Made by a program: the position numbers and the translations under genes. From Kudoa neothunni (Eukaryota > Animalia > Cnidaria): 64,000 nucleotides of DNA. Of the stretch, positions 6,532-62,635 are shown piece after piece. The DNA is taken from NCBI GenBank assembly GCA_964304625.1, contig OZ199839.1, positions 2,573,587 to 2,637,586 on the forward strand, read 5' to 3'. The notes under the pieces were generated by a model. It searched no databases. It was not told the DNA's origin and worked only from the letters and a program-made list of their open reading frames with translations. Positions within the stretch are counted from its first letter, which is position 1; each line of letters begins with the position of its first letter.

Positions 6532-6974
6532 TATTTTTTTAAAATCTAAACACTCACAAATTTTACTTCAAATAAATTTATAGGTATAGCGATAATATCA
6601 TATACATTAAGAAACTATGAAAGAATATATGATAGGATTAAAACTTGTTAACGGGAGTTCCACCCAAAAATCCTTGGAGAGTTAGATTTAAACATTGATG
6701 TTTAATTCAAGGGTTTTTGAACCTTATAATGAATAAAAAATTAAATAATGTCGATTATCAGATTAACTTCAAGTCATTTATTATTTTAATTAAATGTTAA
6801 TTTCGAATAAGAATTCTAATAAGCAGCATTTTAACTTTCTATTAAACAGGAATAAGAAACAGGTAATTAAATACATTCAGAGAAAGGGCTGTGTATATGT
6901 GTTAATTCATTCTTTTTAAATCAAATAACATGAAGGTTTTGATAATAATTCGAAGGGTTAGTTTAAGAAATGTG

Positions 6975-9593
6975 TTATTTGATTCCTTTGCTTGAAGCCA
7001 CCTTCTTACGGTAAATGACCAAATAATAAAATAGTCCCGCAGCTACACTTAGCATCACTCCAACAACAGATCCCCTATTTAACTTGTTGAAATTTTTATT
7101 CAGAACAATTTTACGATATAATTCCAGCCACTTTCATGCTAAATATACGTTAGATTATTAGAAAAATCATTTGCTTACTGATTAGAGTCAGCTTTTGCAA
7201 TGGCATCTGGTGCTAAATATACCAATTCACCAATCATATTTCATTTATTGTTTTATTTACTTGAATTTGTATTATTAATTTAGAAAATTTAAACATTTAT
7301 AAGAAATCAATCATATATTTTTATTTAATTATTAAAATTTGAAAAAAGTGACTACCTTTTGGTCGTGGCACGCGTGACTTTGGTGGTCTTTGAAGCTAAT
7401 TTTGAATTTAAGTAAAGAAAAATAAATGGAATTGAATATCACTAAATAATTATTTAATAATCTACTCATTTATATGATGTGATTACCTTGTAGTATCCGC
7501 CACACTCTCAATTTCTATATAACGGTTGTATTTGAAATAAACGAATAAAAATACCCTTTCTCACAATGTATATTGTATCTCCATGCATGTAACTTTCAGG
7601 CTTCACAATTAATTTGTATGATTTTTTGGACGAGACACCAGAGTATGTAATAAAGTTGCATTTTGTATCGCAACTAGCACTTGTTATAAGACACGGAGTT
7701 CCTACTATTTCAGGCTTTCTGGCATCTGTAATATCAATCAAGGTATTGTAACATTTAATTGCTGACATATCTCTCGTAGGATTCATTGCTCCCACAAACT
7801 TTATGGTCTCACCATCAAACAAATGGGTTATGGTTAATGTTGCGCCGTCTAATGAGCAATTTTCATTTAAAATATTCAAAAAAATTACCAGTTAATAACT
7901 CATTAATTTCTGTATCACTTTTTGTACTATCAAATTTTATTAACAAGGAATATTTTGTCCCGCGCTCCAACCTTTCAAGTTCAGCTCGCTCAGAACACAT
8001 TATTCTGCAAGGGAATCTTCCATTACAGTATACATCAGAGTAAAAATTTGTCCATTCATTCTTTACTTTAATTAAACAAGCAATTTTATCATTGTTCTCG
8101 GTCATTGGCTGGAATCGCATCCTTGTATCCATAATGGTTATGTCGGTACTTCCAAGTTGGACTGCATCTCCATCTCCGTCTATACATTTGTTTAAGAAAA
8201 TCATCAAATTTATTTACCTGTAATAAAATAATATTCAAACGTTATTTCTTCCGATCCCTCATTTTTTGCATCCACAGTTACGATATATGCTGTTCCAGCA
8301 CTCAAGTTGGAAACACTTTTTATGATACAGCCAGTGTCACAAGTATCTCCGGAACATTGTCGTTGTATTTTCGTTTTAACTTTTAGATCAAGAGAATTCC
8401 TTACATCAAGTGTACAACTTGAAGCACTAATTGTATCAGTTAATAATTTCATAGTTGTTAAATCTAATGTAAATCCGGCATTTGAAATATCTGTCGGCGT
8501 TATGCCATTATTTGCCACTAAAAAATGTCATTGGGATTAAATTAAAATTTTTTACATGTATAGGTTTTTGTCTCAGCAGTTTTCTTCTTCACTTCGCGGA
8601 TATAAACAGTCACCTGCAAATACGTTGCATCGGCTATCATTACAACCTCAGTACATGGATTAATACATAAAATCGTGTTTATTCCACAGTTTTTCACGTA
8701 ATCATTTTCCCCTGCAGTTTGATCTTTTATTTTAAATTCACATAGCTTATCAGGCTTTTGGTTCAAAATTGTTATTTTATATTTTTGTTCTCCTGAAACT
8801 TGTGTCACTGTGTAGAAAAATTCAGAAAATTCAGAGGCTTTTTGAGTGTATTCGTTATTTATATAATAAAGAAAACTAGGGAAATAATTTCCACATTCTA
8901 AAGTATATTCATATCGATAAGTAGTTAAACTCGCTTTCAATGTGGCTTGATTTGTTGTGGTACAAGTCTCACTTGCCTCTGATTTCGCAATCTCAATACC
9001 GTCTGAGGTCAGCTTGCACTCTGTTATTGGACATATCATGTTATATGTAAACTTAACTTTTTCATCTACAGTTGTTACAGTAATGTCTGGATTCAAAACA
9101 TAGCCTAAATAAAATTAGCATTACCTAAAATATAAATAGCATTTTCTAATAGGTTTACTTCTTGGTATCATAAATACTTTTTTGAGTAATGGATTTTCTT
9201 CTAAGTTTTCTTTTGAATTAATGACTCTTATTAAAACAAATTTTGAATAAAATGAAGCTTCTTCTATATCTATATTGTCTTTATCGCATTGTAGAACGCA
9301 TTTATTTTCTGTTTCTGTGTCTTTACAAAGAAAATCTGCGTAAGTCAATTTATTTTGCTGGTTGAGCTTAGAAATTTGTATATAACATTTTTTATCAGCA
9401 TCAAAATCTTTTAACGATATTTTAATTTTATTTCTATTATTCTCTACTTCAGTGATTCCAAACTCAAGGTAATGTGATTTTCCCTCTGGCTTATCATTGA
9501 AGGAATCTAAAATGTATATATGTTTAATATTATTTAATATAACATACAAAATATGATTGTCGAAAATGTCACAACTGTTACGAGAAGTCTCAT
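6975..9593 (-). CDS. Array copy 1: Cys-containing FN3-like type I membrane protein, 683 aa; exons 9593-9548, 9506-9159, 9104-8556, 8517-8218, 8179-7889, 7848-7555, 7514-7488, 7395-7357, 7212-7179, 7138-7115, 7074-6975
   Basis: Exons sum to 2052 nt (684 codons including TAA) only with stwintron splicing of introns 7 and 8. Signal peptide MRLLVTVVTFSTIIFYSFN; FN3-like motifs (NLSAGTAYIVTVDA, RLERGTKYSLLI); stalk EIESVADTTTSKTTKVTRATTKTPD; TM VAGIISGSVVGVMLSVAAGLFYYLVIY; tail RKKVASSKGIK*. Confidence 0.85.
7213..7487 (-). other. Two [D1,2]-type nested twin introns flanking a 39-nt exon, copy 1 (A 7487-7396, inner 7486-7442; B 7356-7213, inner 7355-7260)
   Basis: A: ACAA|g gtaatc...tttag tgata...aattag|CT. 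B: AAAA|g gtagtc...ttcaag taaat...tttag|CA. Confidence 0.8.
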
Positions 9594-9627
9594 TATGTAT
9601 AAAATAGATTTAATCCGTTATGTGGCA

Positions 9628-9682
9628 ATTCACTAATACATCTCGATTCAATTGGCAATGAATTCCCCACAAGTCGTCAAAA
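9628..9682 (-). promoter_or_regulatory. Conserved non-coding block ~35-90 nt upstream of the ATG in all seven paralogues (putative core promoter/initiator)
   Basis: The + strand attca(c)gaata...(c)gattcaatt(g)rcaatgaa block recurs at ~9630, 16400, 24292, 32588, 38991, 48798 and 59870. The minus-strand reading contains TCATT in six copies. Confidence 0.5.
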
Positions 9683-10089
9683 TATTGAAAATCTGTAAAA
9701 ATAATAATAACTAAATAATTTTATACAAACATATGATTTTTAGCCCCATCAGAGAGAAAATATAAAAAGTCTAAAATTATATGGATAATTGATAAAATGT
9801 AACTTATTAGATCCTTCTTTTGGTTCAAATAATATTTATTTCTATGCAACAAGATAATAATAAATTCAAGTTTATTTTCACATTAACACAACATATTTTT
9901 TATAAAATTGAATATAACATGAATGTCAGGAAAAAATACGTACTACAGTCGGTAATCGGTTTTGCATACAACCGATTTTTCACACTCTTTGTGAAATTAT
10001 TTAATTATGACTCTAAATGTCTCCAATGTTTATATAAATAAATATATTTAACATAACGATAATTTTGGTTCAAATAATAGACCTTAAAT

Positions 10090-13743: not shown

Positions 13744-16370
13744 TTATCTGATCCCTATGCTCGAAGCCACCTTCTTGCGATAGATAACCAAGTAATAAAA
13801 TAGTCCTGCAGCGACACATAGCATCGCTCCAACAACAGAACCACTATTAAAATTGTTAACAATTCTATTCAGAACAATTTTACGATATAATCCCAGCCAC
13901 TTTCATACTAAATCTATGTTAGATTATTGCAAAAATTATATTTTTACTGGTTAGAGTCAGCTTTTGCAATGACATCTGGTGCTAAATATACCGATTTTTC
14001 AATTATAGTTCATATTTTCATATATTTACTAAACATTATGTTAACATATCAGTATGAGCTCCAAATATTAGTAAATAATGTATTATATATATTACATTAT
14101 TAAAGTATGAATAAATTTCTTACCTTTTGGTTGTGGCGCGCGTGACTTTTGTGGATTTTGGAGCTAATTTTCAAATTGAATAAAAATTGAAAATAATTTA
14201 ATTGTTAATTACTAAATATTCAGTTAATAATTCACCCATTTATTAAACTCGATTACCTTGTGGTATCTGCCACAATCTCATTTTCTATATAATAGGTACA
14301 TTTTAACTAAGCGATTAAAAATACCTTTCCTCACAATGTATATAATATCTCCATGTATGTACTTTTCGGGCTTTACTATTAATTTGTACGATTTTTCAGA
14401 CGAAACACCAGGATAAGTGATTGAGTTGCATTTTGTTTCGCAATTGGTATCAGTCACCAAACACGGAGTTCCTACTAATGTCGGTTTTGTAGCAACTGTG
14501 ATGTCGATCAATGTGTTGTAACATTTAATTGTTGACATATCTCTAGGGGGATTCATGACACCAACAAATTTTATAGTATCAGCATTAATCGAATGCGTTA
14601 TGCTTAATGTTGCACCATCTAAAGAGGTTTAACTATTCATCAATTTAATAAAAATGACCTGTTATCAATCCAGTAATCTCTATATCACTTTTTCTGCTAT
14701 CAAATTTTATTATCAAGGAATATTCGGTCCCGCGTTCCAACCTTTCAAGCTCAACTTGCTCAGAACACATTACTCTGCAAGGAAATCTTCCATTGCAATG
14801 TACATCAGTGTAAAAACTTTGCCATTCAGTCTTTATCTTAATTAAACAAGAAATGTTATCATTGTTCTCGGTCATTGGCTGCAATCGCATTCTTGTATCC
14901 ATAATGTTTATTTTATTACTTTCAAGTTGGATTGCATCTCCGCCTGTATATTTATTTAATAAATTCATTAAATTTATTTACTTGTCTTATAGTAATATTC
15001 AAATTTTGTCACTTCTGAATCATCTTTTTTTGCATCCACAATTATGATATAAGCTGTTCCAGCACTTAAGTTGATAAAACTTTTTTTGTCACGAGTGGTG
15101 GTACATGGTGAAGATGAGCATTCTGGTTGTATTTTTGTTGTAATTGTTGGATCAAGAGCCTTTCTAAAGTGAACTGTACAACTATTCGCCTCATTTGTAC
15201 CAGTTGAAGATTTCATATTTGTCAGATCTAATGTGAATCCGGTGTTTGAACGTTCTGTCGGAGTTATGCCATTGTTTGCAACTATAAGGAAGTTAATCGC
15301 CTCTCTTTGAATTTTCGATACTTGTATAGGTTTTTCTTTGAGGTTCACTTTTGATTACCTCATGGATATAGATGGATACCTGTGGAGAGTTGAGATTGGT
15401 ATTCATCACAACCTCCGTACATGGATTAATGCATGACGTCTCGCTTGATCCACAACTTACCACAAATGTATTATCCCCTTCAGCCTGATTCTTTATCTTA
15501 AATTCACAGAGTTTATCGGGCTTTTGATTTAAAATTGTGATTGTAGTTTTTTGTTTCACGGCGTCTTGAGTAACTTTGAAGAAAAATTCGGAGAACTCAG
15601 AGGCTTTTTTTGTGTATTCATTGTTGATGTAATAAACAAAGCTAGGGAAATAATCACCACACACTAAAGTGTAATCGAATCGATAGGTTATTAAACTTGC
15701 TTTCAAGCTAGCTTGGTTTGTTGTTGTACATGTTTCATCTGCCACTGATTTCACAATATCAATGCCACCTGAGGTCAGTTTACATTCTTTTATAGGGCAA
15801 ACCATGTTATACGTAAATTTAACCTGTTCATCTTCTGTTGTTACAGTTATATCTGGATTCAAAACATAACCTAATTAAAGTTAACATTATTCACAAATAA
15901 AATCAAAGTTTCTAGTAGGATTACTTTTTGGTATCATAAATATTTTTATAAGTGTCGGTTCAGTTACTGAATTTTCTGTTGTGCTAGCAACTTGTATTAG
16001 AATAAATTTTAAAGAAAATGATGCTTCTTCGATGTCAAGATTTTGTGTGTTGCATTCTACAATGCATTTATTAGGTGTTTCAGTGTTTGCACAAGAAAAA
16101 TCTTTGTAAGTAAATTTATTTTCTTCGTTCACTCGTGAAATTTGTATATAACATTTTTTGTTGGCCTCAAAATCTTTTAACGATATTTTAACTTTATTTC
16201 TATTATTTCCTACTTCGGTGATTCCAAACTCAAGATAATCTGATTTCTCCGCTGGCGCAGTATTGAACGAACCTAAAATATATCAATGTATATATACATA
16301 ATACGAATAAATAAAAATTACAAAGTATAAATGTTGAAATAGTCACAACAGACGCAAACAGTCCCATCAT
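13744..16370 (-). CDS. Array copy 2: FN3-like type I membrane protein (11 exons)
   Basis: Start (M)MGLFASVVTISTFILC; same exon structure as copy 1. ORF-track pieces 15887-16132, 15293-15862, 14974-15348, 14645-14968 and 14278-14556. Stalk ENEIVADTTTPKSTKVTRATTKTPD, TM exon, stop at 13744-13746. Confidence 0.85.
13982..14257 (-). other. Two [D1,2] twin introns, copy 2 (A 14257-14164, inner 14256-14212; B 14124-13982, inner 14123-14029)
   Basis: Reconstituted outer donors are GTAATT and GTAAAT; exon 14163-14125 is 39 nt. Confidence 0.82.
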
Positions 16371-17304: not shown

Positions 17305-19165
17305 TGTGGCGGATTAACATTGGATTAACAGTGTTTTACTTGCGCTATAATTGGTGATCCCTAGACAAATGTCCTTTTTCAAAAGCAATGAAAACGACGC
17401 TAATATAACCGCTGATGCAGCGGCTACCAAGCTATCCCAATTTTGGACATCACAAACCAAAATTTAGTTCAATCAGATCCAAGCTCAATTCCATATTCCC
17501 ATATTCGAGGAATCAAGCAAGACGATACCAAATTATATCATGTGATCGCGGCGTTAGACCGAGAAACCGTCATAAGAATCACTGACCTTTTGGAAGATCC
17601 ACCCAAGACGCAAAAGTACGATACCCTCAAAAATAGGCTCATTGGCACGTTTGGTCTCATCGAAACTAAGAGATCTAGACGATTATTACACATGCCGGAA
17701 TTTGGAGACCGAAAACCATCTGCTCTCTTTGATGAGATGTTGTCGTTTATGGGAGATCACAGACCTTGTTTCTGGTTCAATTATATATTTATGCAACATT
17801 TGCCTGAGAACATACGAACTCAACTTTCTTAGAAATCTTTCGAAAACACCAGAAATATGGCTGAATTAGCTGACTTACTTTGGTTAGCGAAAGATGCTAA
17901 CAATGATGCCTACATAAATGAAATTGCAAACATGAATAAAATTTCTCTTCCTTCGACAATGGATGATAACAATTCCAATCAAGTTACCAACGATGTATGC
18001 TTCTACCATCGTAAATTTGGAAAAATTTCCAGGAAGTGTTTGAAACCCTGCAGATTTGCGGGAAACTTCCAAGCCAGGCGGCAATAATTACAAGTGCGTC
18101 CGGCAGCCGAAATAATTTGTTATATTTATTTGACACAAGATCTAAAACACACTTCCTCGTAGACTCAGGTGCACAAGTGAGCGTCTATCCATATAATGAT
18201 TACGACACGCTAGTTAACAACCAAAAGTTCCTGATAGCCGCCAATGACTCCAAAATTTTTTTGTTTGGTAATAAAAAATTGGAGCTTACCTTCCAAGGTG
18301 TTACATATCGTTGGACTTTTGTAATCGCCAAGGTATCACAACCTTTATTGGGATCTGACATCCTCAAACATTATGGGCTACTAACTGACATAGGAAATAA
18401 AAAGCTTGTCTCTCCTCAAAACTCACTAACAATACCCTTATTCAGTCGAAACTTTGGAACAACGCAGATAGCATCAAACTTCTACCTTACCGACGAACCA
18501 TTTTCAAATAAACCCAAACACAGCATACGATTTATCATTGCTATCGATGGACAACCAGTCCATGCGAAACCTCGACGGCTTTCTCCACAAAAATTAAAAG
18601 CAGCCAAAGAAGGTTTCCAAAAAATGGATCAACTAGGAATTGTTAGACAATCCTCAAGTCCTTGGTCTTCACCGTTGCACATGGTACCCAAAAAGGACGG
18701 ATCACGGAGACCATGGGTGGATTATAGGAAACTAAACAATATTACACGACCAGACAGGTATCCTACACCCAATATCAATGACAACACCTTCAAACTCCAT
18801 GGCTGCATTTTCTGTTCCAAAATTGATCTAATTCATGGTTATAATCGGATTACTGTGAAACCTGAGGATATTCCCAAAACGACTGTCACTACACCTTTTG
18901 GACGGTATGAATTCCTGAGGATGCTTTTCGGTCTCAAAAATACTGCCCAAATCTTCCAAAGACATCTTGACAATATTTCTGGAGATTTGGAATATGTATT
19001 TGCTTATTTGGATGACTTTTCAGTTGCTAGTAAAACCTTGGCAGAACACGAAAAACACGTCGAAAAAGTTAGATTGCGTCTTATTTAGAATGGCTTATCA
19101 ATTAATGAAGATAAATATGTTTTCAGAAAACCTGAAATATCCTACTTGGGGCACAAAATCATTCG
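17305..19165 (+). mobile_element. Degenerate, 3'-truncated Ty3/gypsy LTR retrotransposon (gag-protease-RT)
   Basis: PBS-like tggtgatccc at 17352. Gag-like KLSQFW..*F.QIQAQF and CFYHRKFG..SRKC.KPC; protease FLVDSGAQVS; RT SPWSSPLHMVPKKDG, DYRKLN, YLDD. No RNase H or integrase visible. Confidence 0.9.
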
Positions 19166-21633: not shown

Positions 21634-24253
21634 CTATCTGCTTCTTCCACCCATTGCAACCTTCTTTCGGTAAATAACCATGTAATAGAACAATCCTCCT
21701 GCTACGCATAGTAATACTCCAATAACACTCCCCCTAACAAAATCGTCATTTATTTTATATTAAGAAATGTTACGATATAATTCCTGCGGTCTTTAAGCTA
21801 TATTTATTATTAGCATCATATTCGAAGAATTTATATTTTACTGGTTTGAGTTCACTGGTGCAATAATATCAGGGGCTAAAAATAGAATTATCGAATTTTC
21901 CTTTTTAATATTTTTCAGGGTTTACTATAAAATAAATATTATTTTAAAATTCTAATAGAGATGTTGTTTATGCATTTTTATTGGACCAATATTGTAAAAA
22001 TATGATTTTGAATAGTTTTAATCATGATCAAATCGCTTACCCTTTTGTGGTTCTCCGAATAACTTTATTTGTAGGTGAAGCTAACGTTGTAAATTAAATG
22101 ACTATAATTTACATTTGTACTTACTAATCAATATTTAACGACGTTCATTTAAAAATTTTAATACCGTGTATTTTCTTCTACTTTAACGGTCGCTATTAGA
22201 AGATTAATTTATTATTTTTTAAGCGAAATACTTGGTCTGATCGTATAAATCGTTTCTCCATGTATATATCTCGCAGGTTTCACAACAAGTTTATATGTCT
22301 TTTTAGGGGAATAATCTCTGTATGTCATTGTATCGCATTTTATTTGACAACTTGTGTCAGATTCTGTGCAGGGAGATCCAATTTGTGTTGGATTGGTAAC
22401 ATCCGTGATATCAAGTAATGTGTTATAGCATATTATTTGAGACATATCTCTTGGTGGATCCATGACCGCAGAAAAAGTTACACTTTCACCATTTATTTTG
22501 TGACTTACAATTAATGTTGCCCCATCTACATTATATAACGATTGCAAAACTAAGCATTAATACCTGTTAACAATCCATCAATTTCCTTATCATTTTTAGA
22601 ACTATCGAACTTTATTAAAATCGAATATGTTGTTCCTCTTTCCAATCTTTCCAGCTTAATTGATTTAGAGCACATTATTCTGCATGGGAATCTTCCATTA
22701 CAATAGGCGTCAGTATAGAATTTTGCCCATTCGCTCTTTATTTTGACCATGCAAGCGACTTTATCCTCGTTTGTAGTCATTGGTTGAAATCGCATTCTTG
22801 TGTCCAAAACTGTTATTTCTTCATTGGAAAGGGTGATGTCCTCTCCAACTATTGAATGATATAATTTAGTTATACACAAAATTTATCACTTGTTTTAATA
22901 TAAAATTCGGACGTTGTTTCCATATTATCTTTATTTGCAACAACAATGACGACGTAATTTGTTCCCTTAGTTAAGGAGGAAACACTCTTGCTATTGCAAC
23001 TGTTCCCACAGTTAATATTAGAACATTGGGTTTCAGTTTTTGTTGCTACGTTAGGATCAAGGGCTTTTCTCGTGTACACAGTACAACTGGCTGCAGCTGT
23101 ACCATCTGAGGATTTCATACTCGAAACATCTAATGTAAATTCGGTTTGTGTCACACCTGATGCCTCTATGGCATTATTTTCAACTAAAGATATATTAGAT
23201 AGAGTTAAATTAATTTTTAATACTTGTATATATTTTTATTTGAGGTGTTATATTGGGTATTTCACGAATCATAACTGACGCCTGTTGGTAAGTCACATCT
23301 ACTTTCATCACGACCTCGGTGCAAAGACTTATGCACGAAGTCGTGCCTGTTCCACAAGTAGTTACATATGTTTTATCTTCGGCAGATGCATCTTTTATCT
23401 TGAATTCACAAATTCTATCAGGCTTAGGGTTCAGAATACTAATTTTAGTATTTGATTGGCCCGTTTCTCTAGTAACCTTGATGAAAAAATTTGAAAATTC
23501 TGATGCTTTTTTTGTGTATTTATTATGGAAATAATATATAAAATCCGGGAAAAAATCATCACATTTTAAAGTATATTCATGTCGATACGTCAGAAAACTT
23601 GCTTTTAGACTAGCTTGACTTGCTGATGTACAAGAATCTGAGCCGACGGTAGATTTGTCAATTTCAATGCCATCAGAAGTAATGTTACACTCTGTTATAG
23701 GGCAAATCTTATTGTAAGTAAACTTAATATCATTATTATCTTTTGATACAGTTATATCTGGGCTCATTATATAGTCTACAAATATAAAAAATTTAATAAG
23801 CTCTGCGATCTGATGATTGTATTACTTTTCGGTATCAAAAAGACTTTCGTAAGAGTTGGTGCATTTTCAGCATTGGCCGCCGTATCGGCAGCCTTTACTA
23901 AAACAAATATTGTTGAAAATGAGGCTTCTTCTAAATCTAATTCTTGCGTATTGCAAGGAACAACACATTTATTTGATGTGTCGGTTCTGATACAACTAAA
24001 GTCTTTGTATGACAATTTGGTTCCTTCTATGTTGGATAATTGTATATAGCATTGATCTGTAGTGATGAATCCTTTGAATGATATTTTAAGTTTATTCCTC
24101 TTATTTTCTTCTTTTTTCATCCCAAATTCTAGATAATTTGTTTTTTGCGCATCCTGAGTATTTATCACGCCTAAAAAATATGTATAAAGATGGATAAAAG
24201 CATCTACCTATGAATAAAATTAGAAAAACGTAAATTTCAACAAATATCGCCAT
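21634..24253 (-). CDS. Array copy 3 (most divergent paralogue): FN3-like type I membrane protein (11 exons)
   Basis: Start MAIFVEIYVFLILFIGVINT. ORF-track pieces 23776-24168, 23210-23767, 22870-23154, 22550-22879 and 22212-22547. Stalk TTVKVEENTPSPTNKVIRRTTKAPD; TM TAGIISGSVIGVLLCVAGGLFYYMVIY; tail RKKVAMGGRSR*. Confidence 0.85.
21876..22165 (-). other. Two [D1,2] twin introns, copy 3 (A 22165-22081, inner 22164-22124; B 22041-21876, inner 22040-21925)
   Basis: A: ACAC|g gtatta...gattag taagt...gttag|CT (outer donor GTAAGT). B: AAAG|g gtaagc...tatag taaac...tttag|CC. Confidence 0.85.
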
Positions 24254-29927: not shown

Positions 29928-32554
29928 TTATCTGATCCCTTTGCTCGAAGCCACCTTCTTGCGATAGATAACCAAGTAATAAAATAGTCCTGCAGCGACA
30001 CATAGCATCGCTCCAACAACAGAACCACTATTAAAATTGTTAACAATTCTATTCAGAACAATTTTACGATATAATCCCAGCCACTTTCATACTAAATCTA
30101 TGTTAGATTATTACAAAAATTATATTTTTACTGGTTAGAGTCAGCTTTTGCAATGACATCTGGTGCTAAATATACCGATTTTTCAATTATAGTTCATATG
30201 TTTATATATTTACTAAAAAGTATATAATTATAAAATTACGAAGTCCAAATATTTATGAGAAATGAATTATGTAATTTTATTATTAGAATATGAATAAATA
30301 GCTTACCCTTTGGTTGTGGCACGCGTGACTTTTGTGGTCGATGGAGCTAATTTTCAATTTAAAACAAAATAAAGAAATAATCTAACTGATGATTACTAAA
30401 TAAATATATAATAATTCAGTCGTTTATTAAACATGATTACCTTGTAGTATCTGTCACACTCTCACCTTCTATAGAATGATTGCATTTCAAATAAACAATT
30501 AAAAATACCTTTTCTCACAATATATATTGTCTCTCCATGCATGTATTTTTCAGGTTTCACAATTAATTTGTATGATTTTTCGGATGAGACACCAGTATAT
30601 GTGATTGAGTCGCATTTTGTTTCGCAAACTGCACTGGCCGTAGATGTCGCAGGGCACGGATTCCCCACTATTTTAGGTGTTGTAGCATCTGTAATATCAA
30701 TCAATGTATTAGAGCATTTTATTTCTGCCATATTTCTTGATGGATTCATAGCTCCGACAAACTTTATGGTCCCGCCATTAAACGAATGTGTTATGGTTAA
30801 TGTTGCACCATCTAATGAAAAGGTTAAATTGAAAAATAAAACGAGAATTACCTGTTATCAATTCTTCAACTATTTTATCACTTTTTGTGCTATCAAATTT
30901 TATCATCACGGAGTATTGTGTCCCGCGCCCCAATCTTTCGAGTTCAACTTGTTCAGAACACATTACTCTGCAAGGGAACCTTCCATTGCAATGTACATCA
31001 GTGTAAAAACTTTGCCATTCAGTCTTTATCTTAATTAAACAAGAAATTTTATCATTGTTCTCGGCCATTGGCTGCAATCGCATTCTTGTATCCATAATGT
31101 TTATTTTATTACTTTCAAGTTGGATTGCATCTCCGCCTAAGTGCTAATTTTAAATTTTCACTAAAATTTATTGACTTGTTTTTAAGTAATATTCAAACGT
31201 TGTAGTTTCTGTTTCACCATTTTTTGCTTCAATCATTATTACATAAGTTGTTCCAGCACTTAAGTTTGTAACACTTTTACTGTCACAAGTGGTTGTGCAC
31301 GTTTCTTGTGAGCATTGTGGTGTTTTTCTTGTGGCTGTTGGATCAAGGGCCTTTCTTACATAAACTGTACAACTAATAGCGCCATCTGTACCAGACGATA
31401 ATTTCATATGTGTTAAATCTAAAGTAAAACCAGTGTCTGAAAGTGCGGTTGGGACTATTCCATTGTTTGCAACTATAACAAAGTTAATCATCCTTCCTTT
31501 AAATTTTTATACTTGTGTAGGTTTTAATTGGATCTACTTCCTTGGTCACTTCACGGATAAAAACAGATCCTAATTGGAAGTTTGCATCAGCTATCATTAC
31601 CACCTCAGTACATGGATTAATACATGACGTTACACTTGATCCACATTTTTTCACATATTCATTATTTCCTGCACTTTGTTTTTGTATCCTAAATTCGCAG
31701 AGCTTATCAGGTTTTTGATTCAGGATTGCAATTTTATATTTATCATCTGATTCTTTTGCCATTGTGAAGAAAAATTCAGAAAATTCAGAGGCCTTTTTTG
31801 TGAATTCATTATTTACATAATAAACAAAAATGGGGAAGTAATCGCCGCATTCTATAGTATAATCGTAACGATAGGTTATTAAACTTGCTTTCAAAGTAGC
31901 TTGACCCGCTGATTCACAATTATCACTTTCTCCTGATTTCGCAATCTCAATACCATCTGTGTTTAGTTTGCATTCAGATATTGGGCATAACATTTTGTAA
32001 TTAAACTTGACTTTTTCATTTTCTTTTTGTACAGTTATATCTGGATTCAGAACATAGCCTAAGTATAGTTAAGATCATCGAAAATCTAAATTATGTTCTA
32101 TATTTAGATTACTTTTTGGTATCACAAAAACCTTTTTAAAATTAGGATTAGATTCAGCCTTTTCTTTTGTATCAGCAAATTTAATTAAAACAAAGGTTGC
32201 AGAAAAAGAAGCAATTTTGATCTCCAGGTTTTCTGTCGTACATGGCACAACGCATATACCGATTTTTTCAGTGTTTAAACAAGGAAAATCTTCGTAAGCA
32301 ATTTTTTTTTCATTGTTGATTTTAGAAAGTTGTATGTGACATATAAAATTGGCATCAAAATTTTTTAGCGATATTTTAATTTTATTTCTATTATTTGACT
32401 CTTCGGTGATTCCATACTCAAGGAAATTTGATTTTATCGTTGGTGAAACATTTAACGAATCTAAACATATCCATGTGTATATATGTAATATAAATTAATC
32501 AAACTAACAAAGTATGAAGGTTGAAAAAGTCACAACTGACAGAAGAAGTCGCAT
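29928..32554 (-). CDS. Array copy 4: FN3-like type I membrane protein (11 exons)
   Basis: Start MRLLLSVVTFSTFILYSLN. Exon 2 is open but absent from the ORF track. Pieces 31499-31993, 31168-31491, 30778-31095 and 30462-30749; TM exon; stop at 29928-29930. Confidence 0.85.
30166..30441 (-). other. Two [D1,2] twin introns, copy 4 (A 30441-30347, inner 30440-30396; B 30307-30166, inner 30306-30213)
   Basis: Outer donors GTAATC and GTAAAT after inner excision; exon 30346-30308 is 39 nt. Confidence 0.82.
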
Positions 32555-36324: not shown

Positions 36325-38956
36325 TTATCTGATTCCCTTGCTTGAAGCCACCTTCTTGCGGTAAATAACCAAATAATAAAATAATCCTGCAGCTACACAT
36401 AGTATTACTCCAACGACAGATCCCCTATTAAAATTGTTAACATCTTTATTCAGAACAATTTTACGATATAATCCCGGCCACCTTCATACTAAATCTATGT
36501 TAGTTCATTACAAAAATTATCTTTTTACTGGTTAGAATCAGTTTTTGCAATTACATCTGGTGCTAAATATACCATTTTTCAATTATACTTTATATATTCA
36601 TGTATTTACTAAAAAGTATATAATTATAAAATTAAGAAGTCCAAATATTTATGAGAAATGAATTATGTAATTTTATTTCATTATTAGTATATGAATAAAT
36701 AGCTTACCCTTTGGTTGTGGCACGCGTGACTTTTGTGGTCGGTGGAGCTAATTTTCAATTTAAAACAAAATAAAGAAATAATCTAATTGATAATTACTAA
36801 ATATTTATATAATAATTCAGTCGTTTATTAAACATGATTACCTTGTAGTATCTGTCACACTCTCACCTTCTATAGAATGATTGCATCTCAAATAAACAAT
36901 TAAAAATACCTTTTCTCACAATATATATTGTTTCTCCATGCATGTATTTTTCAGGTTTCACTATTAATTTGTATGATTTTTCAGATGAAACACCAGTATA
37001 TGTGATTGAGTCGCATTTTGTATCGCAAACTGCACCGGCCGTAGATGTCGCAGGGCACGGATTCCCCACTATTTTAGGTGTTGTAGCATCTGTAATATCA
37101 ATCAATGTATTAGAGCATTTTATTTCTGCCATATTTCTTGATGGATTCATAGCTCCGACAAACTTTATGGTCCCGCCATTAAACGAATGTGTTATGGTTA
37201 ATGTCGCACCATCTAATGAAAAGGTTAAATTGAAAAATAAAACGAGAATTACCTGTTATCAATTCTTCAACTATTTTATCACTTTTTGTGCTATCAAATT
37301 TTATCATCACGGAGTATTGTGTCCCGCGCTCCAATCTTTCGAGTTCAACTTGTTCAGAACACATTACTCTGCAAGGGAACCTTCCATTGCAATGTACATC
37401 AGTGTAGAAATTTGTCCATTCATTCTTTATTTTAATTAAACAAGCAATTTTATCATTGTTCTCGGCCATTGGCTGTAATCGTACTCTTGTATCCATAATG
37501 TTTATTTTATTACTTTCAAGTTGTACCGTATCTCCATCTGTATATTTATTTAATAAATTCACAAAATTTATTTACTTGTCCTTAAATAATATTCAAATGT
37601 TGTCACTTCTGAATTATCCTTTTTTGCATCAACAATTATGATATAAGTTGTTCCGGCAATTAAGTTGGAAATGCTTTTAGTGTCACAATTGGTGGTGTGT
37701 ACTGCATCTGAATATTGCGGTTCTTGTTTTTTTGTAATTGTTGGATCAAGAGCCTTTCTCATGCTAACAGTACAACTGTTAGCATCACTTGTACCAGTTG
37801 ATGACTTCATATTTGAAAAATCTAGTGTAAATCCGGTGTTTGTAGTATCTTTCGGAGTAATATCATTATTTGCCACTATAAGTAAGTTAATCGTCTTTCA
37901 TTTAACTTTTTATACTTGTGTGTGTTTTAACTTGATCTTCTTTCATTGTCACTTCACGAATATAAACAGATTTCAGTTGAAAATTTTCGTCGGCTTTCAT
38001 TACAACCATGGTACATGGATGAATACATATATCCGAGTTTATTCCACAATTTTTCACGTATTCTTTTTCTCGTGCAGTTTGATTTTTTATTCTGAATTCG
38101 CAAAGTTTATCAGGTTTTGGATTTAGAATTGTAATTTTATATTTTTCATCTCCTGATTCTTTAGTCACTTTGAAGAAAAATTGGGAATATTCAGAGGCCT
38201 TTTTTGTATATTTATTGTTTATATAATAAACAAAATTAGGGAAATAATCGCCACATTCTAATGTATAATCGTATCGATAGGTTATTAAACTTGCCTTCAA
38301 ACTAGCTTGATTTTCTGTCTTACAAGTATCACTTGTCTCTGATTTCACAACATCAAAACCACCTGAGGTCAGTTTGCATTCTGTTATTGGACATATCATT
38401 CTATAAGTAAACTTGATATTTTCCGCTTCCGTTGTTACAGAAATTCCTGGATTCAAAACATAGCCTAAAAAAATTAAGAATACCCAACAAATCAATTGTA
38501 TTCTCTAGAAGGATTACTTTTTGGTATCAAAAAAACCTTCCTAAAGGTGGGATTAGATTCGGCGTTTTCGTTTGTATCAGCAACTTTGATTAAAATAAAT
38601 ATTGCTGAAAAAGATGCCACCTTCACCTCCAGATTTTCTTTATCACATGACACAACGCATTTACCACTTATTCCAGTGTTATCACAAGACAAATCTTCGT
38701 AAATCAATTGGTTTTCGCTGACTTTTAAAATTTGAATGTGACAGCGTTTAGTGGCATCAAAACTCTTTAGCGATATTTTAATTTTATTTCTATTATTCGT
38801 CACTTCGGTGAGTCCAAATTCAACGTAATTTGATTTTGTCGTAGGGTCAGCATTTAACGAACCTATAATATATCCAGGCGTGTATAATAATATAAACAAA
38901 TACAACTTACAAAATATGAATGCGGAAAAAGTCACAACGGACATAAACAGTCCCAT
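36325..38956 (-). CDS. Array copy 5: FN3-like type I membrane protein (11 exons)
   Basis: Start MGLFMSVVTFSAFIF. ORF pieces 38492-38956, 37902-38495, 37568-37876, 37179-37562 and 36863-37150; TM exon; stop at 36325-36327. Confidence 0.85.
36563..36842 (-). other. Two [D1,2] twin introns, copy 5 (A 36842-36748, inner 36841-36797; B 36708-36563, inner 36707-36609)
   Basis: Outer donors GTAATT and GTAAAT; exon 36747-36709 is 39 nt. Confidence 0.82.
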
Positions 38957-46134: not shown

Positions 46135-48758
46135 TTATCTAATTCCTTTGCTTGATGCCACCTTCTTGCGATAGATAACCAAATAATAAAACAATCCAGC
46201 AGCTACACATAGAATCACTCCCAACAACAGATCCTCTATTAAAATTGTTACATCCCATTTTCAGAAAGATTTTACGATATAATTCCAGCCACTTTCATAC
46301 TAAATTTATGTTAGCTAATTACAAAAATAATCTTTTTACTGGTTGGAGTCTGCTTTTGCAATGATATCTGGCGCTAAATATACCATTTTTCAATTATACT
46401 TTATATATTCATGTATTTACTAAAAAGTATATTATTGTAAAATTACGAAATCAATATTTTAATAAGAAATAAATTATATAATTTTTTATAGTTAGAATAT
46501 GAATAACTTGTTTACCCCTTAGTTGTGGCACGCGTAATTTTTGTGGTTGATGGAGCTAATTTTCAAATTTAAATAAATGTGTAAATAATTGAGTTGATGA
46601 TTACTAAATATACTACTAAATCATTAATTTATTAAACGTTGTTTACCTTGTAGTATCTGTCACACTCTCACCTCTCTATAGTAATGATTGCATTTCAAAT
46701 AACCAATTAAAAATACCTTTTTCTTCACAATATATATTGTATCTCCGTGCATGTAGTTTTCAGGCTTCACTATATAATTTGTACGATTTGTCCGATGAGA
46801 CACCAGAGTATGTGATTGAATTGCATTTTGTTTCACAACCAGCACCGGTGGCAAGACACGGAGTTCCCACTGTAATGGGTTTTGTAGCATCTGTAATATC
46901 AATCAATGTATTGTAACATTTTGTTGTTAACATGTCTCTCGGGGGATTCATAACTCCGGCAAAAGTTATGGTCCCGCCATTAAACGAATGGCGTTATGGT
47001 TAATGTTTGCACCATCTAAGATGAGATAATTATTCATCAATTTATATAATAAGTACCTGTTGTCAATCCAGTAACTATTTTATCATTTATTTTTCATCAA
47101 ATTTTATCATCAAGGAATATTTGGTACCGCGCTCCAGCCTTTGAAGTTCAACTCTCTCAGAGCACATTACTCTGCATGGAAAATCTTCCGTTGCAGTATA
47201 CATCAGTATAAACATTTGTCCATTCATTCATTATTTTAATTAAACACGCAATATTATCATTATTCGGAGTCATTGGCTGGAATCGAATGTCTTGTATCCA
47301 TGATATTTATATTTGTAGTTGGAAGTTCTAATTCTTCTCCACCTAAGTGCTTATGGATAAAATTTATTTTATAAAACTTAATACTGGTTTTTATATAGTA
47401 TTGATACGTCGTTTGTACTGTCCCTGCATCCGTCGTATCAACCATAATAACGTATGCTGTTCCGGTATTTAAGATGTTAACCCTTTCGTTATTACGGCTA
47501 CTGCCACAGCTCCCATCCGAACATTGTAATTGTGTTTTTGTTGTAATTGTTGGATCAAGGGCCTTTCTTACGTAAACTGTACAACCAGTAGCGTCACCTG
47601 TACCAGATGATGATTTCATATTTGCTAAATCTAAAGTAAAACCAGTAACTGAAAGTGCGGTTGGGATTATTTTATTTATTTGTCACTATAACAAAGTTAA
47701 TCGCCCTTTCTTTACTTTTTATACTTATGTAAGTCTTAATTTGATGTACTTTTTTTGCCACCTCACGAATATAAACAGACTCCAGTTGAAAGTTTGTATC
47801 GGCTCTCATTTCAACCTCAGTACATGGATGAATACATATTTTCGAATTTTCTCCACAGTTTGTCACATATTCATTTTCTCCTGAAGTTTTATCTTTTAAT
47901 CTAAATTCGCAGAGCTTATCAGGTTTTTTGTTAATAATTGTAATTTTATATTTTTCATTTCCTGATTCATTTGTCACTGTGAAGAAAAATTCAGAAAATT
48001 CAGGAGCCTTTTTTGTGTAATCATTGTTGATATAATAAACAAAACTAGGGAAATAATCGCCGCATTCTAAAGTGTAATCGTACCGATAGGTTATTAAACT
48101 TGCTTTCAAGCTAGCTTGATCTGTTGATTCACATGTTACAGTTTGTTCTGATCCCACAATATCAATACCATCTGAAGTCAGTTTGTATTGTGTAATAGGA
48201 CAAATCATGTTATATGTAAACTTAATATTTTCAGCTTCCGTTGTTACAGTAATACTAGGATTCAGAACGTAGTCTTAGTAAAATTAAGATTATTCAAAAA
48301 ATAAATGGCATTTTTTAAATGAATTACTTTTTGGTATCATAAATACTTTTTTGAGTAATGGAATCGTTCCCAACTGTTCATTTGAGTTAAAAACTTTAAT
48401 TAAAATAAATTTTGAATAAAATGAAGCTTCTTCCACTTCTATACTTTCCTTGTTGCATGCTACAATGCATTTTGTATCTGTTGGAGTTTCTGTACATTTG
48501 AAATCTGCGTAAATCAATTTATTTTGCTGGTTAAGCTTAGAAATTTGTATGTAACATATTTTTCCGACATCAAAATTTTTCAGCGATATTTTAATTTTAT
48601 CTCTTTTGTTGTCCACTTTAATGAAACCAAACTCAAGGTAGTTTGATTTCGTCGTTGTTTCAATGCTTATAGAAACTAAATAATATTTAAACAATAATGT
48701 AACAAAAGTTACGTAATGCGGAACTTAAAATGAACCCAACTGATAAAAGAAGCTTCAT
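46135..48758 (-). pseudogene. Array copy 6: frameshifted paralogue (pseudogene or consensus errors)
   Basis: Exons 1-3 and 8-11 look intact. Multiple single-base indels lie between ~46670 and ~47680; the first produces VTNK* at 47672. Confidence 0.65.
46374..46647 (-). other. Two [D1,2] twin introns, copy 6 (A 46647-46556, inner 46646-46604; B 46516-46374, inner 46515-46420)
   Basis: Outer donors GTAATC and GTAAAT; exon 46555-46517 is 39 nt. Confidence 0.78.
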
Positions 48759-49259
48759 TGTAAACTAAACGAAACCGACGTAATCTGTGTTTTGGGCATT
48801 CATGAATATAGATCAATTCAATGAACAATGAAATTTTCGATATATCTTATAATCGTGGATTAACTATATAAATTTCGAAAAATTAGAATATTCTTTCCAA
48901 ATGATTGATCATAAATTGAATATATCTTAATTATAAAACTATTCGAAATATCTTATATCAAAGCTAAATAAAAAATTACATAATTCGATTAATATTATAA
49001 CATAAATTTATTCACAATAAATCTTTAAATTCAAGGTAAAAGTTCCTTTCAAATTCCAGTAATATAATTTTGATCACATCCAAATAATGGGTATTTGAAA
49101 TTTTGCAAAATTATTTAATCCAAACATTAAAAATAACTATTCTATACCTTCATCTTTCTTACCCATCTACTTTCCTCAATATATATGGTTCCATAGTCAT
49201 TGATAGCGATTTAGAACAAACAATATTCATCTACATAAATTAATATAAAATTAATTTCT

Positions 49260-57204: not shown

Positions 57205-59829
57205 TTATCTGATTCCCTTGCTTGAAGCCACCTTCTTGCGGTAAATAACCAAATAATAAAATAATCCTGCAGCTACACATAGCATTACTCCAACAACAGA
57301 TCCTCTATTAAAATTGTTAACATCTTTATTCAGAACAATTTTACGATATAATGCCGGCCACTTTCATACTAAATTTATGTTAGCTAATTACAAAAATAAT
57401 CTTTTTACTGGTTAGAGTCTGCTTTTGCAATGACATCTGGCGCTAAATATACCATTTTTCAATTATACTTTATTTATTCATGTACTTACTAAAAAGTATA
57501 TTATTGTAAAATTACGAAATCAAGATGTTAATAAGAAATAAATTATATAATTTTATTTAGTTAGAATATGAATAACTTGTTTACCCGTTGGTTGTGGCAC
57601 GCGTAACTTCTTTGGCTGATGGAGCTAATTATCAAATTTTAAATAAATGTGGAAATAATTGAGTTGTTGATTACTAAATACATACTAAATAATTAATTTA
57701 TTAAACGTGTTTACCTTGTAGTATCTGTCACACTCTCACCTTCTATATAATTATAATGGGTGTATTTCAAATAAATAATTAAAAATACCTTTTCTCACAA
57801 TATATATTGTATCTCCGTGCATGTATTTTTCAGGTTTCACTATTAATTTGTACGATTTTTCCGATGAGACACCAGTATATGTGATTAAGTCGCATTTTGT
57901 ATCGCAAACAGCATCGATCGTAGATGTCGCTGGACACGAATTCCCCACTATTGTAGGTTTTGTAGCATCTGTAATATCAATCAATGTATTGGAGCATTTT
58001 ATTTCAGCCATATTTCTCGGAGGGTTCATAACTCCCACAAATTTTATGCTCTCGCCATTAAACGAATGTGTTATGGTTAATATTGCACCGTCTAATGAGG
58101 GATAATTATTCATCATTTTAATAAAAATGACCTGTTATCAATTCAGTAATTTCTTTATCTTTATTTATGCCATCAAATTTTATCATCACGGAGTATTGTG
58201 TCCCGCGCTCCAATCTTTCGAGTTCAACTTGTTCAGAACACATTACTCTGCAAGGAAACCTTCCATTGCAATGTACATCAGTGTAGAAATTTGCCCATTC
58301 ATTCTTTATTTTAATTAAACAAGCAATTTTATTAGTGTTCTGAGCCATTGGCTGGAATCGCATTCTTGTATCCATGATATTTATATTAGCTTTTGGAAGC
58401 TCGACTACATCTCCGTCTATATATTTTATTAATAAATTTACTAAAATATATTAACTTGTTTCGAAATAATATTCAAACGTCTTTATTTCTGTTTCGTCAT
58501 TTTTAGCTTCAATAATTATAATGTAAGCTGTTCCAGCACTTAAGCTTGTAACACTCTTGCTGCTACAGATATTGTCACAGACCCCGGGCGAACATTGCGC
58601 TGTTGTTTTAGCACTAGTTATAGGATCAAAAGCCTTTCTTACATAAACTGTGCAGCTAGTAGCGTCAACTGTACCAGAAGATGATTTCATATTTGTTAAA
58701 TCTAAAGTAAAACCAACGTTTGAAGGATCTTTTGGAATTATGCCATTGTTTGCAACTATAACAGGGTTAATCGTCTCTTATTGAACTTTTGATACTTGTG
58801 TACGTTTTTTTTTGAGGTTCCGTCTTGGTTACTTCTCGTATATAGACAGATGCTTGTTGATAATCGGTATTGGTATTCATTACAACCTCAGTACATGGAT
58901 GAATACATGGCTCCGAATTTTTTCTGCAGTTTTTCACGTATGCACTCTCACCTGCAGTTTGATCTTTTATCATAAATTCGCATAGTTTATCTGGTTTTTG
59001 ATTCAGAATTGTAATTTTATGTTTTTCTTCTCCTGACACTTTCGTCACTGTGAAGAAAAATTCAGAATATTCAGAAGCCTTTTTTGTGTAATCATTGTTG
59101 ATATAATAAACAAAACTAGGGAAATAATTGTCACATTCCAAAGTATAATCGTATCGATAGGTTAATAAACTTGACTTCAAAATAGCTCGATTTGATGATT
59201 TGCATGTATCACTTGTATCTGATTTCGCAATATCAATACCGCTTGATTTCAGTTTACATTCTGATATTGGACATATCATGTTATAAGTAAACTTAACTTC
59301 TTCGTTCTCTTTTGTTACAGTTATATCCGGGTCCAGAACATAGTCTTAGGAAAATTAAGATTATCCAAAAAATAAATGGCATTTTTTAAATGAATTACTT
59401 TTTGGTATCATAAATACTTTTTTGAGTATTGGAGTCGTTTCCAAATCGTCTCTTGAGTTAACGACTTGTATTAAAATAAATTTTGAATAAAATGAAGCTT
59501 CTTCCACATCAATACTTTCTTTGTTGCATGCTACAACGCATTTTGTAGCTGTTAATGTGTCTGTACAACTAAAATCATCGTAAGTCAACTTCTTTTGCTC
59601 GTTAAGCTTAGAAATTTTTATGTAACATATTTTGTCGGCAACAAAATTTTTCAGTAATATTTTAATTATATCTCTTTTGTTCGCCGCTTTAGTTAAACCA
59701 AACTCAAGGTAGTTTGATTTTGTCGTTGTTTGAGTGTTTATGGAAACTAGATAATATTTAAACAATATTGTAACGAAATTTACATAATGAGAAGGTTAAA
59801 ATGAACCAAAATGATAACTGCTGTCTCAT
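57205..59829 (-). CDS. Array copy 7: FN3-like type I membrane protein (11 exons)
   Basis: Start MRQQLSFWFILTFSL. ORF pieces 59361-59765, 58767-59279, 58451-58690, 58118-58375 and 57751-58116; TM exon; stop at 57205-57207. Confidence 0.85.
57443..57715 (-). other. Two [D1,2] twin introns, copy 7 (A 57715-57625, inner 57714-57674; B 57585-57443, inner 57584-57489)
   Basis: Outer donors GTAATC and GTAAGT; exon 57624-57586 is 39 nt. Confidence 0.84.
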
Positions 59830-61447: not shown

Positions 61448-62635
61448 ATGTATCCAACCATTAGAGAACAAAAGCTAATTGAAGCCCACATTCAGAAAAA
61501 TTCTGAATGTATTGATGGCGACTATTCAAGGATTAAATTTCTGAGAGAGGAACATGTGTCATTTTTGGAGGGTTGTTTGAGTGCATTACCAAGGGAATTT
61601 CAGTCGTTAAGTGCCAGCCAACCATGGATCATGTATTGGATATTGCACTCATTGGAGCTTTTGGGAATTGAAATTGATAACAAAAATTTGGATAATGCAA
61701 TTGAATATATAACAAAATGTCAGTCGTCTAGCGGGGGTTTTGGGGGTGGACCTGGACAAGAACCTCACATAGGAAACACATACGCTGCTGTAACGAATCG
61801 GCTATTTTGGATCATTATCCATTTTGAAATTTAGATATGTTCACTTTCGATCCTCGGTAAGATGGATCCAAAAGCGTACGATGTGGTTGATCGCGCAGGA
61901 CTGAAACGTTTTATTCTCCGATGCAAAAACAGGGATGGATCATATAAAAACGCAATCGATAACGAAACCGATTTGAGGGCGATGTATTGTGCTATAGCGT
62001 CAGCTAAGATGTGTCACGTCTTGTCAAGTGACATGTACCAAGGAACAGTGGAATACATTGCGAAATGTCAGGGTTATGATGGAGGATTTGGTGCGGTTCC
62101 CGGTTCTGAATCACATGCCGGTTACACGTTTTGTGCTGCAGCCACGTTGTCTATGCTTGACGTGGATGCAGAGTTTTTCGACAAAAAGATGCTGCTCAGA
62201 TGGATAACTCATCGTCAAATGCTTTCGGAAGGTGGTTTCCAAGGAAGAACCTTTAAATTAGTTGATTCCTGTTACTCCTATTGGATTGGAGCTATATTTT
62301 ATATCATGTTTGGGGATGAATTTTTTGACGATCAAATCAACATTCCTCGTCACATGTTTTCTCGAAGTGCATTACAAGCGTACATTCTTAACAATTGTCA
62401 ACTCGAGACTGGCGGGCTTATCGACAAACCTGGGAAATTTGTCGATGTTTATCACACTTGTTACGCTCTAAGTGGGCTTTCCTTGAGTGGAATTCATCCC
62501 GATATTGAAGCTGATCGGTTTATCATTACGAATAACAGTGGTGATTTTCTGGTTAGATGCAATGCGACATTTAATCTATGTCATGAAACGCTGAAAAATC
62601 TATTAACATATTTCTCAAGTAGAGATGAGATTTAG
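61448..62635 (+). CDS. FNTB: Protein farnesyltransferase subunit beta; exons 61448-61789 and 61835-62635
   Basis: A 45-nt GT-AG intron (61790-61834) joins TYAA to ICSLSILG. Motifs SQPWIMYWILHSL, GGFGGGPGQ, ESHAGYTFC, GGFQGRTFKLVDSCYSYW (Zn ligands D, C) and DKPGK..DVYHTCYALSGLS. Confidence 0.95.

Follow-up and report, generated by a model that had tools for sequence, protein, structure and literature searches.

The 64,000-nucleotide window analysed here, a stretch of the Kudoa neothunni genome, carries seven copies of a gene on the minus strand, in whose 3' part introns 7 and 8 display a nested organisation (exons are numbered as in the initial annotation). For K. neothunni from yellowfin tuna, a genome of 40.2 Mb (N50 12.0 Mb) is published, with three chromosomes plus a mitochondrial contig of 18,219 bp (PMC12239612), and the assembly searched here comprised 40.26 Mb in 4 contigs (three of 17.15, 12.04 and 11.05 Mb and one of 18,219 bp). 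When the complete assembly was searched with a single exon, 14 such genes, termed family A, were identified, and 14/14 display the nested anatomy at both intron 7 and intron 8. Database searches were run exon by exon, exons being joined solely for reading-frame tests. The window exons gave no significant match in Pfam, and no homologue was found outside the K. neothunni genome, the profile search returning 4 spurious repeat matches and the alignment of a second family (family B, below) returning 0. Copy 6 (window 46236-48850) carries several 1-nt insertions relative to a near-identical copy just beyond the window (L002), which reflect either pseudogene status or an assembly error due to low coverage. 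An ORF on the plus strand, between copies 2 and 3 (window 18036-19088) displays retroviral-type protease and reverse-transcriptase-like motifs and was judged by eye to be an LTR retrotransposon fragment, and a Farnesyltransferase beta subunit (PF00432) is encoded at window 61862-62635 (plus strand), its best relative, in run SRR31175926, being 57% identical. A lone SSU rRNA match in the assembly (L019:2030-3470) is a 3' fragment adjoining unrelated AT-rich sequence, and a stricter search did not find the full rDNA. The features of copy 1 and the nested intron 8 of the remaining window copies are arranged as follows.

7488-7514, minus strand: copy 1 exon 7, 27 nt, phase 1-1
7396-7487, minus strand: copy 1 nested intron 7, with G1 at 7487, inner intron 7442-7486 and the rest of the outer intron 7396-7441
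7357-7395, minus strand: copy 1 exon 8, 39 nt, phase 1-1 by the frame test, Ser/Thr-rich stalk
7356, minus strand: copy 1 G1 of the outer donor of intron 8, parted from the rest of the donor by the inner intron
7260-7355, minus strand: copy 1 inner intron of intron 8, 96 nt, GTAGTC ... CAAG
7213-7259, minus strand: copy 1 remainder of outer intron 8, TAAAT ... TTTAG, 48 nt including G1
7179-7212, minus strand: copy 1 exon 9, 34 nt, phase-1 start, first base C
7115-7138, minus strand: copy 1 exon 10, 24 nt, phase 2-2, flanked by the ordinary 40-nt introns 9 and 10
6975-7074, minus strand: copy 1 terminal coding exon, encoding the transmembrane helix, the basic stop-transfer residues and a short tail
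13982-14124, minus strand: copy 2 nested intron 8, inner intron 14029-14123
21876-22041, minus strand: copy 3 nested intron 8, inner intron 21925-22040 (116 nt)
30166-30307, minus strand: copy 4 nested intron 8, inner intron 30213-30306
36563-36708, minus strand: copy 5 nested intron 8, inner intron 36609-36707
46374-46516, minus strand: copy 6 nested intron 8, inner intron 46420-46515; the several 1-nt insertions lie upstream in this gene copy
57443-57585, minus strand: copy 7 nested intron 8, inner intron 57489-57584

Exon phases were tested exon by exon, with no splice model assumed, using stops and the balance of synonymous and non-synonymous variants. Exon 9 is read in phase 1, with stops in 0/13 copies and a synonymous/non-synonymous count of 15/9, while stops occur in 6/13 copies in phase 0 and in 12/13 in phase 2. 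Similarly, exon 8 displays a count of 22/16 in phase 1 versus 7/29 in phase 0 and 3/38 in phase 2, the latter with stops in 8/13 copies. Exon 10 favours phase 2 (9/0) and runs into the hydrophobic helix with its basic residues, and exons 9-11 are conserved in the transmembrane (TM) frame. These tests bear out the initial annotation, in which exon 8 was given 40 nt up to the visible GT and exon 9 a phase-1 start; both the 40 nt and a 34-nt exon 9 are common to 14/14 family-A genes. Thus, one surplus base lies between two phase-1 exons. The removed block of intron 8 cannot slide, because its first base is G and the first base of the next exon is C, and the transmembrane exon can be read only if the G preceding the visible GT is absent from the mRNA.

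The arrangement G/GT ... AG/TAA ... AG at intron 8, with slashes marking splice boundaries, is present in 7/7 window copies, and the seven coordinate pairs assigned to it previously are exact. The earlier measurements of the two components in the window (94-116 nt for the inner and 47-50 nt for the outer introns) and the rebuilt donors GTAAAT, GTAAAC or GTAAGT were likewise recovered. Copy 1 displays the weakest inner acceptor of intron 8 (AAG), the remaining 13 family-A genes having TAG. Intron 8 of copy 1 and that of copy 3 are 58% identical, against 55% for shuffles, with the motif kept in both. In family-A intron 8 competing AGs are fewer than expected (10 vs 25.7 in the inner and 1 vs 16.2 in the outer intron), and the branch-point-like motif TRAY occurs at -25..-7 in 14/14 inner and 13/14 outer introns, where about 7 are expected. 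Family-B intron 8 displays no depletion of competing AGs and no enrichment of TRAY, and branch-point-like enrichment is equally patchy in ordinary introns.

Family B was recognised through a strict genome-wide search for the nested pattern, an insensitive search giving 4 matches vs 3 in the control, one of which was an unrelated-looking gene on chromosome 3 with two nested introns. The family has 69-70 matches in the genome, a few of which are fragments. G/GT ... AG/T was observed at both introns in 59/60 family-B loci read, the odd locus being interrupted by an N run and unrelated sequence, and a few loci with a damaged outer acceptor or a frameshift may be pseudogenes. Both introns are thus nested in 73/74 inspected genes (14/14 in family A and 59/60 in family B). 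Because the family-B genes were parsed with a motif filter and their tails located by an ORF-seeking search, part of the family-B tally is circular; an exon-anchored listing made without the motif filter nevertheless displays a G/GT donor after exon 8 in 49/49 genes, in phase 2 in 48. In the ORF-seeking search, phase 2, which a one-step cut at intron 8 would need, was never chosen. Phase 0 was chosen first in 20 family-B genes, nearly all of one subfamily, via a second AG in intron 9; these 20 tails were set to the consensus by homology, the phase-0 route needing a frame that is closed in exon 8. In many family-B genes (L033-L092) intron 6, before exon 7, seems to end in AAG (for example GCGAAG) rather than YAG.

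G precedes the visible GT of intron 8 in 14/14 family-A and 49/49 anchored family-B genes, and precedes the inner GT in 130/130 parsed nested introns; in contrast, the GT of the ordinary introns 9 and 10 in these genes is preceded by C, A or T and never by G. The base following the inner AG is T in 130/130 parsed introns. The inner acceptor is a near-perfect TTTAG, equal to or better than ordinary acceptors, with TAG in 129/130, and the rebuilt donors (typically AAG/GTAAAT, but also GTAAAA, GTATGT and similar) fit the ordinary GTAA(A/T) consensus. Outer introns measure 38-54 nt over both families and end in YAG in nearly all cases. The inner and outer pieces have median lengths of 42-47 nt vs 40 nt for ordinary introns and an intron-like GC content of 15-17%, exons having 34-37%; in one paralogue (L007) the inner intron of intron 8 is just 42 nt, the size of an ordinary intron. 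In shuffled introns the chance of TAG/TR at an admissible place is 0.23 for family-A intron 8 and ~0.05 for the others. TAG/TR was observed in 13/14 family-A introns 8 (the exception, copy 1, has AAG/TA) and in a further 49/51. The paralogues are related, intron 8 forming 6 single-linkage clusters at 70% identity, and these counts are not independent. Two divergent U1 snRNA genes lie side by side at C2:670702-671375 (L017:987-1145, minus strand, and L017:1501-1660, plus strand), one with the canonical 5' end ACUUACCUG and the other with ACUUACUUG, predicted to prefer A at position -1 of the donor.

This anatomy corresponds to the definition of a [D1,2] stwintron (PMC12403724). A canonical GT-AG inner intron lies between G1 and T2 of an outer donor, its removal would rebuild a consensus donor followed by a canonical outer intron, and the whole unit, including G1, must go for the frame to be open. 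Intron 7 and intron 8 would each consist of two canonical GT-AG introns overlapping by one G. At intron 8 the visible GT is expected to pair with the first good AG, so that the inner intron leaves and the upstream G meets TAAAT, giving in copy 1 the predicted intermediate ACCAAAAG/TAAAT (exon 8, G and TAAAT). The rebuilt donor, typically AAG/GTAAAT, would then direct removal of an intron of ordinary size (47-50 nt), joining the exons in phase 1 (predicted mature copy 1 junction ACCAAAA/CACCAG) and allowing the transmembrane exon to be translated. If the visible GT were instead spliced directly to the last AG (copy 1 ACCAAAAG/CACCAG), one G would be left and translation would stop before the membrane anchor. 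The 5' intron would have to go first, since prior removal of the 3' half would abolish the inner acceptor, which exon 9, starting with C, cannot rebuild. An [A2,3] route at intron 8 was rejected, C being the first base of exon 9 in 14/14 family-A genes. Exon 8 starts with G in some members of one family-B subfamily (L034-L045), and an [A2,3] alternative yielding an identical mRNA is possible at intron 7 of these genes.

When the two modes of removal were modelled, two-step removal at both introns reached the TM segment in 64/64 genes with a consensus tail (13/13 in family A, 51/51 in family B), while one-step removal at intron 7, at intron 8 or at both reached it in 0/64. We consider it highly probable, on genomic evidence, that these introns are a pair of [D1,2] stwintrons, ancestral to a superfamily of FN3-like membrane proteins and multiplied by gene duplication. 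Kudoa RNA reads were too few for annotation in the genome study (PMC12239612). Four RNA runs, whose tuna label is most likely that of the host, gave 0 reads on a family-B gene (L038, chosen for its longer exons and numerous near-identical copies) and are hence uninformative on splicing, and none of the listed runs that contain window 6900-9900 is recorded as RNA.

The same mature mRNA and frame would result from one-step splicing at a non-canonical GG donor, one base 5' of the GT, the internal AG/TAA then being incidental or having a role as an enhancer or branch element. In human CPSF3, one tissue-specific junction of the GG-AG type is reported (PMC4176328) and Kudoa donors are weak (PMC13644364), but FlyBase holds 0 GG-AG introns (PMC4528330), and a GG donor would leave unexplained an acceptor-consensus AG joined to a donor-consensus TAA, at intron-sized spacing, in both introns of 73 genes. 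The U1 of this genome is canonical (ACUUACCUG) and the variant U1 is altered at the base facing -1, not +2; a variant U1 as the reader of a GG donor was accordingly rejected, neither U1 gene changing the base that faces +2. We regard this explanation as very unlikely.

Retention of the G in the mRNA is even less probable, whether the frame is then restored by a microexon, another acceptor, editing or a ribosomal frameshift, or whether a truncated protein lacking the anchor is the main product. Family-A exon 8 is open in phase 0 too, yet its variants in that phase are mostly non-synonymous (see counts above), and the conservation of exons 9-11 in the TM frame also speaks against retention. At intron 8 the inner AG is neither followed by a conserved GT nor preceded by an AG-n-GT microexon, and a microexon, an alternative acceptor and an alternative donor were each rejected there; no conserved slippery sequence was seen by eye. 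In one family-B subfamily, intron 9 does contain another AG, 4 nt upstream, that opens a different frame, but this frame requires one-step removal of both introns, which brings a stop into exon 8 in 50/51 genes. An assembly artefact, with an extra G inserted in short G runs, or a chance motif has a negligible probability. The assembly is indeed a long-read assembly of low coverage, and 1-nt indels occur in copy 6 and in L051; however, 73 genes have the G at both introns, an error repeated at ~145 sites is not credible, the assembly has a QV of 48.5 (PMC12239612), and the internal motif is independent of the G run. Furthermore, 98% of the words sampled from window 6900-9900 occur in one sequencing run, possibly that of the source sample.

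Families A and B are homologous in their last large ectodomain exon (hhalign E 1.4e-5, 26% identity). The family-B domain is predicted to fold as a seven-stranded sandwich (pLDDT 85), its best matches being FN3 domains with weak E-values. Both families share the intron phases 1,1,1,2,2 before the membrane helix, while their introns do not align (z ~0). The shared phase pattern, together with the absence of intron alignment, indicates that the pair is older than the A/B split, and the best reading of these sequences is that it is ancestral to the FN3-like superfamily. A distant relative with a short stalk (L026; C3:8582000-8589500, minus strand), displaying phases 1,2,2 before the TM exon and lacking exons 7-8, has neither nested intron. 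A restriction of nested introns to family A was rejected, the strict pattern being insensitive and family B having since been found. A looser genome-wide pattern returned 65 rows, 59 of them in families A and B and 6 elsewhere, against 53 in the reversed control. Matches outside both families, at or below chance, are located at C1:4696641, C1:6707960, C1:7385075, C2:5738862, C3:3268912 and C3:7831005, and also at L022:1495. With this insensitive pattern there is no sign that nested introns are a genome-wide feature.

The initial annotation had proposed that the two stwintrons arose by tandem duplication of an exon and stwintron unit, a proposal for which the alignments offered no support. Intron 7 and intron 8 align at shuffle level (z 0.13 and -0.15 for family A and 0.38 and 0.28 for family B, compared with 3-16 for positive controls), as do exon 8 and exon 9 (z ~0). 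Tandem duplication may still be the origin, since both introns are in phase 1 and adjacent, and any sequence trace of it would be older than the A/B split. Alternatively, an intron with a pre-existing internal AG/TAA may have gained a G at its donor, by analogy with 'stwintronisation' (PMC7138796), or two introns may have lost the small exon that separated them. Persistence of the motif in the diverged copies 1 and 3 had also been read as a mark of selection; this holds for purifying selection on the reading frame and falls short of a regulatory role. The simplest reason for the pair to persist is that a point mutation in G1, in the inner AG or in the T would in each case put the anchor out of frame. 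No special function is needed for its retention, nearby ordinary introns being as stable in position.

It is doubtful, although conceivable from the gene models, that the tandem stwintrons form a working switch for stalk length and for membrane-bound versus soluble protein. Pairing of the intron 7 inner donor with the intron 8 inner acceptor would drop exon 8 in frame and shorten the stalk, and one-step splicing at intron 8 would place a stop just before the membrane anchor, giving a secreted form. Modelled one-step splicing at intron 8 introduces a stop after 1-2 extra residues in 49/51 family-B genes, an outcome that may merely reflect A/T-rich codons. Were such a switch to operate, one splice decision would set both stalk length and the membrane or soluble state of ~80 variable parasite surface proteins.

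If confirmed by RNA, the tandem [D1,2] stwintrons would establish a donor-split spliceosomal twin intron in an animal. They most likely represent a known mechanism in a new kingdom, at unusual copy number. The literature found under the term consists of fungal studies or passing mentions and contains no animal stwintron, subscription papers lying mostly outside the search, and nested introns are not mentioned in the parts consulted of a recent survey of myxozoan introns (PMC13644364); the pair would, provisionally, be the first stwintron reported in animals. Authors of the fungal work see no reason against stwintrons in other kingdoms (PMC6616335). With ~145 naturally occurring variants of two homologous sites, this single genome provides a comparative set for ordered splicing and for intron definition in 40-nt introns. 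The junction looks like GG-AG and is beyond standard gene finders, so that ~80 surface-protein genes are probably mis-annotated at the membrane anchor. Other compact genomes of animals could be screened for this signature.

Fungal [D1,2] stwintrons are known from Pezizomycotina, including Hypoxylaceae and Xylariaceae (PMC12403724, PMC9024468, PMC5639578). The Kudoa introns resemble them in having a U2-type inner intron between G1 and U2 of the outer donor, in being short, and in that the one-step mis-splicing product would retain one G. In contrast, the host is an animal (Myxozoa), the Kudoa pair is described from genomic sequence, and two stwintrons flank one small exon. In fungal bioDA the inner intron was lost repeatedly (PMC5639578), whereas no loss was observed among 73 Kudoa genes. 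The sister stwintrons of Xylariales are mobile, with sequence-similar copies at new gene positions and internal symmetry or near-terminal inverted repeats, while the Kudoa copies occupy homologous positions only, the pair apparently having been multiplied by whole-gene duplication at fixed positions in the gene. No self-complementarity was detected in the Kudoa nested introns (mean self-reverse-complement z -0.1 to 0.8). Drosophila and vertebrate ratchet sites are AG/GT, a zero-length exon, lie mostly in very long introns and keep the frame when skipped. As in recursive splicing, described as involving abutting introns (PMC6616335), a single intervening sequence would be removed in two steps with an internal AG that regenerates a donor. 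The Kudoa introns differ from ratchet points in that the site is AG/T in every parsed intron, the AG never being directly followed by GT, in that the G comes from upstream, in the 80-166 nt length of the introns and in the frameshift caused by skipping. A further parallel is the [D5,6] stwintron of the Aspergillus reticulon-like gene (PMC6616335), which is also donor-split, lies beside a small exon and has an inner donor able to pair with a farther acceptor, skipping the small exon. The position of the split differs and in Kudoa the farther acceptor would be the inner AG of the second stwintron; a pairing of this type predicts in-frame skipping of exon 8 in Kudoa.
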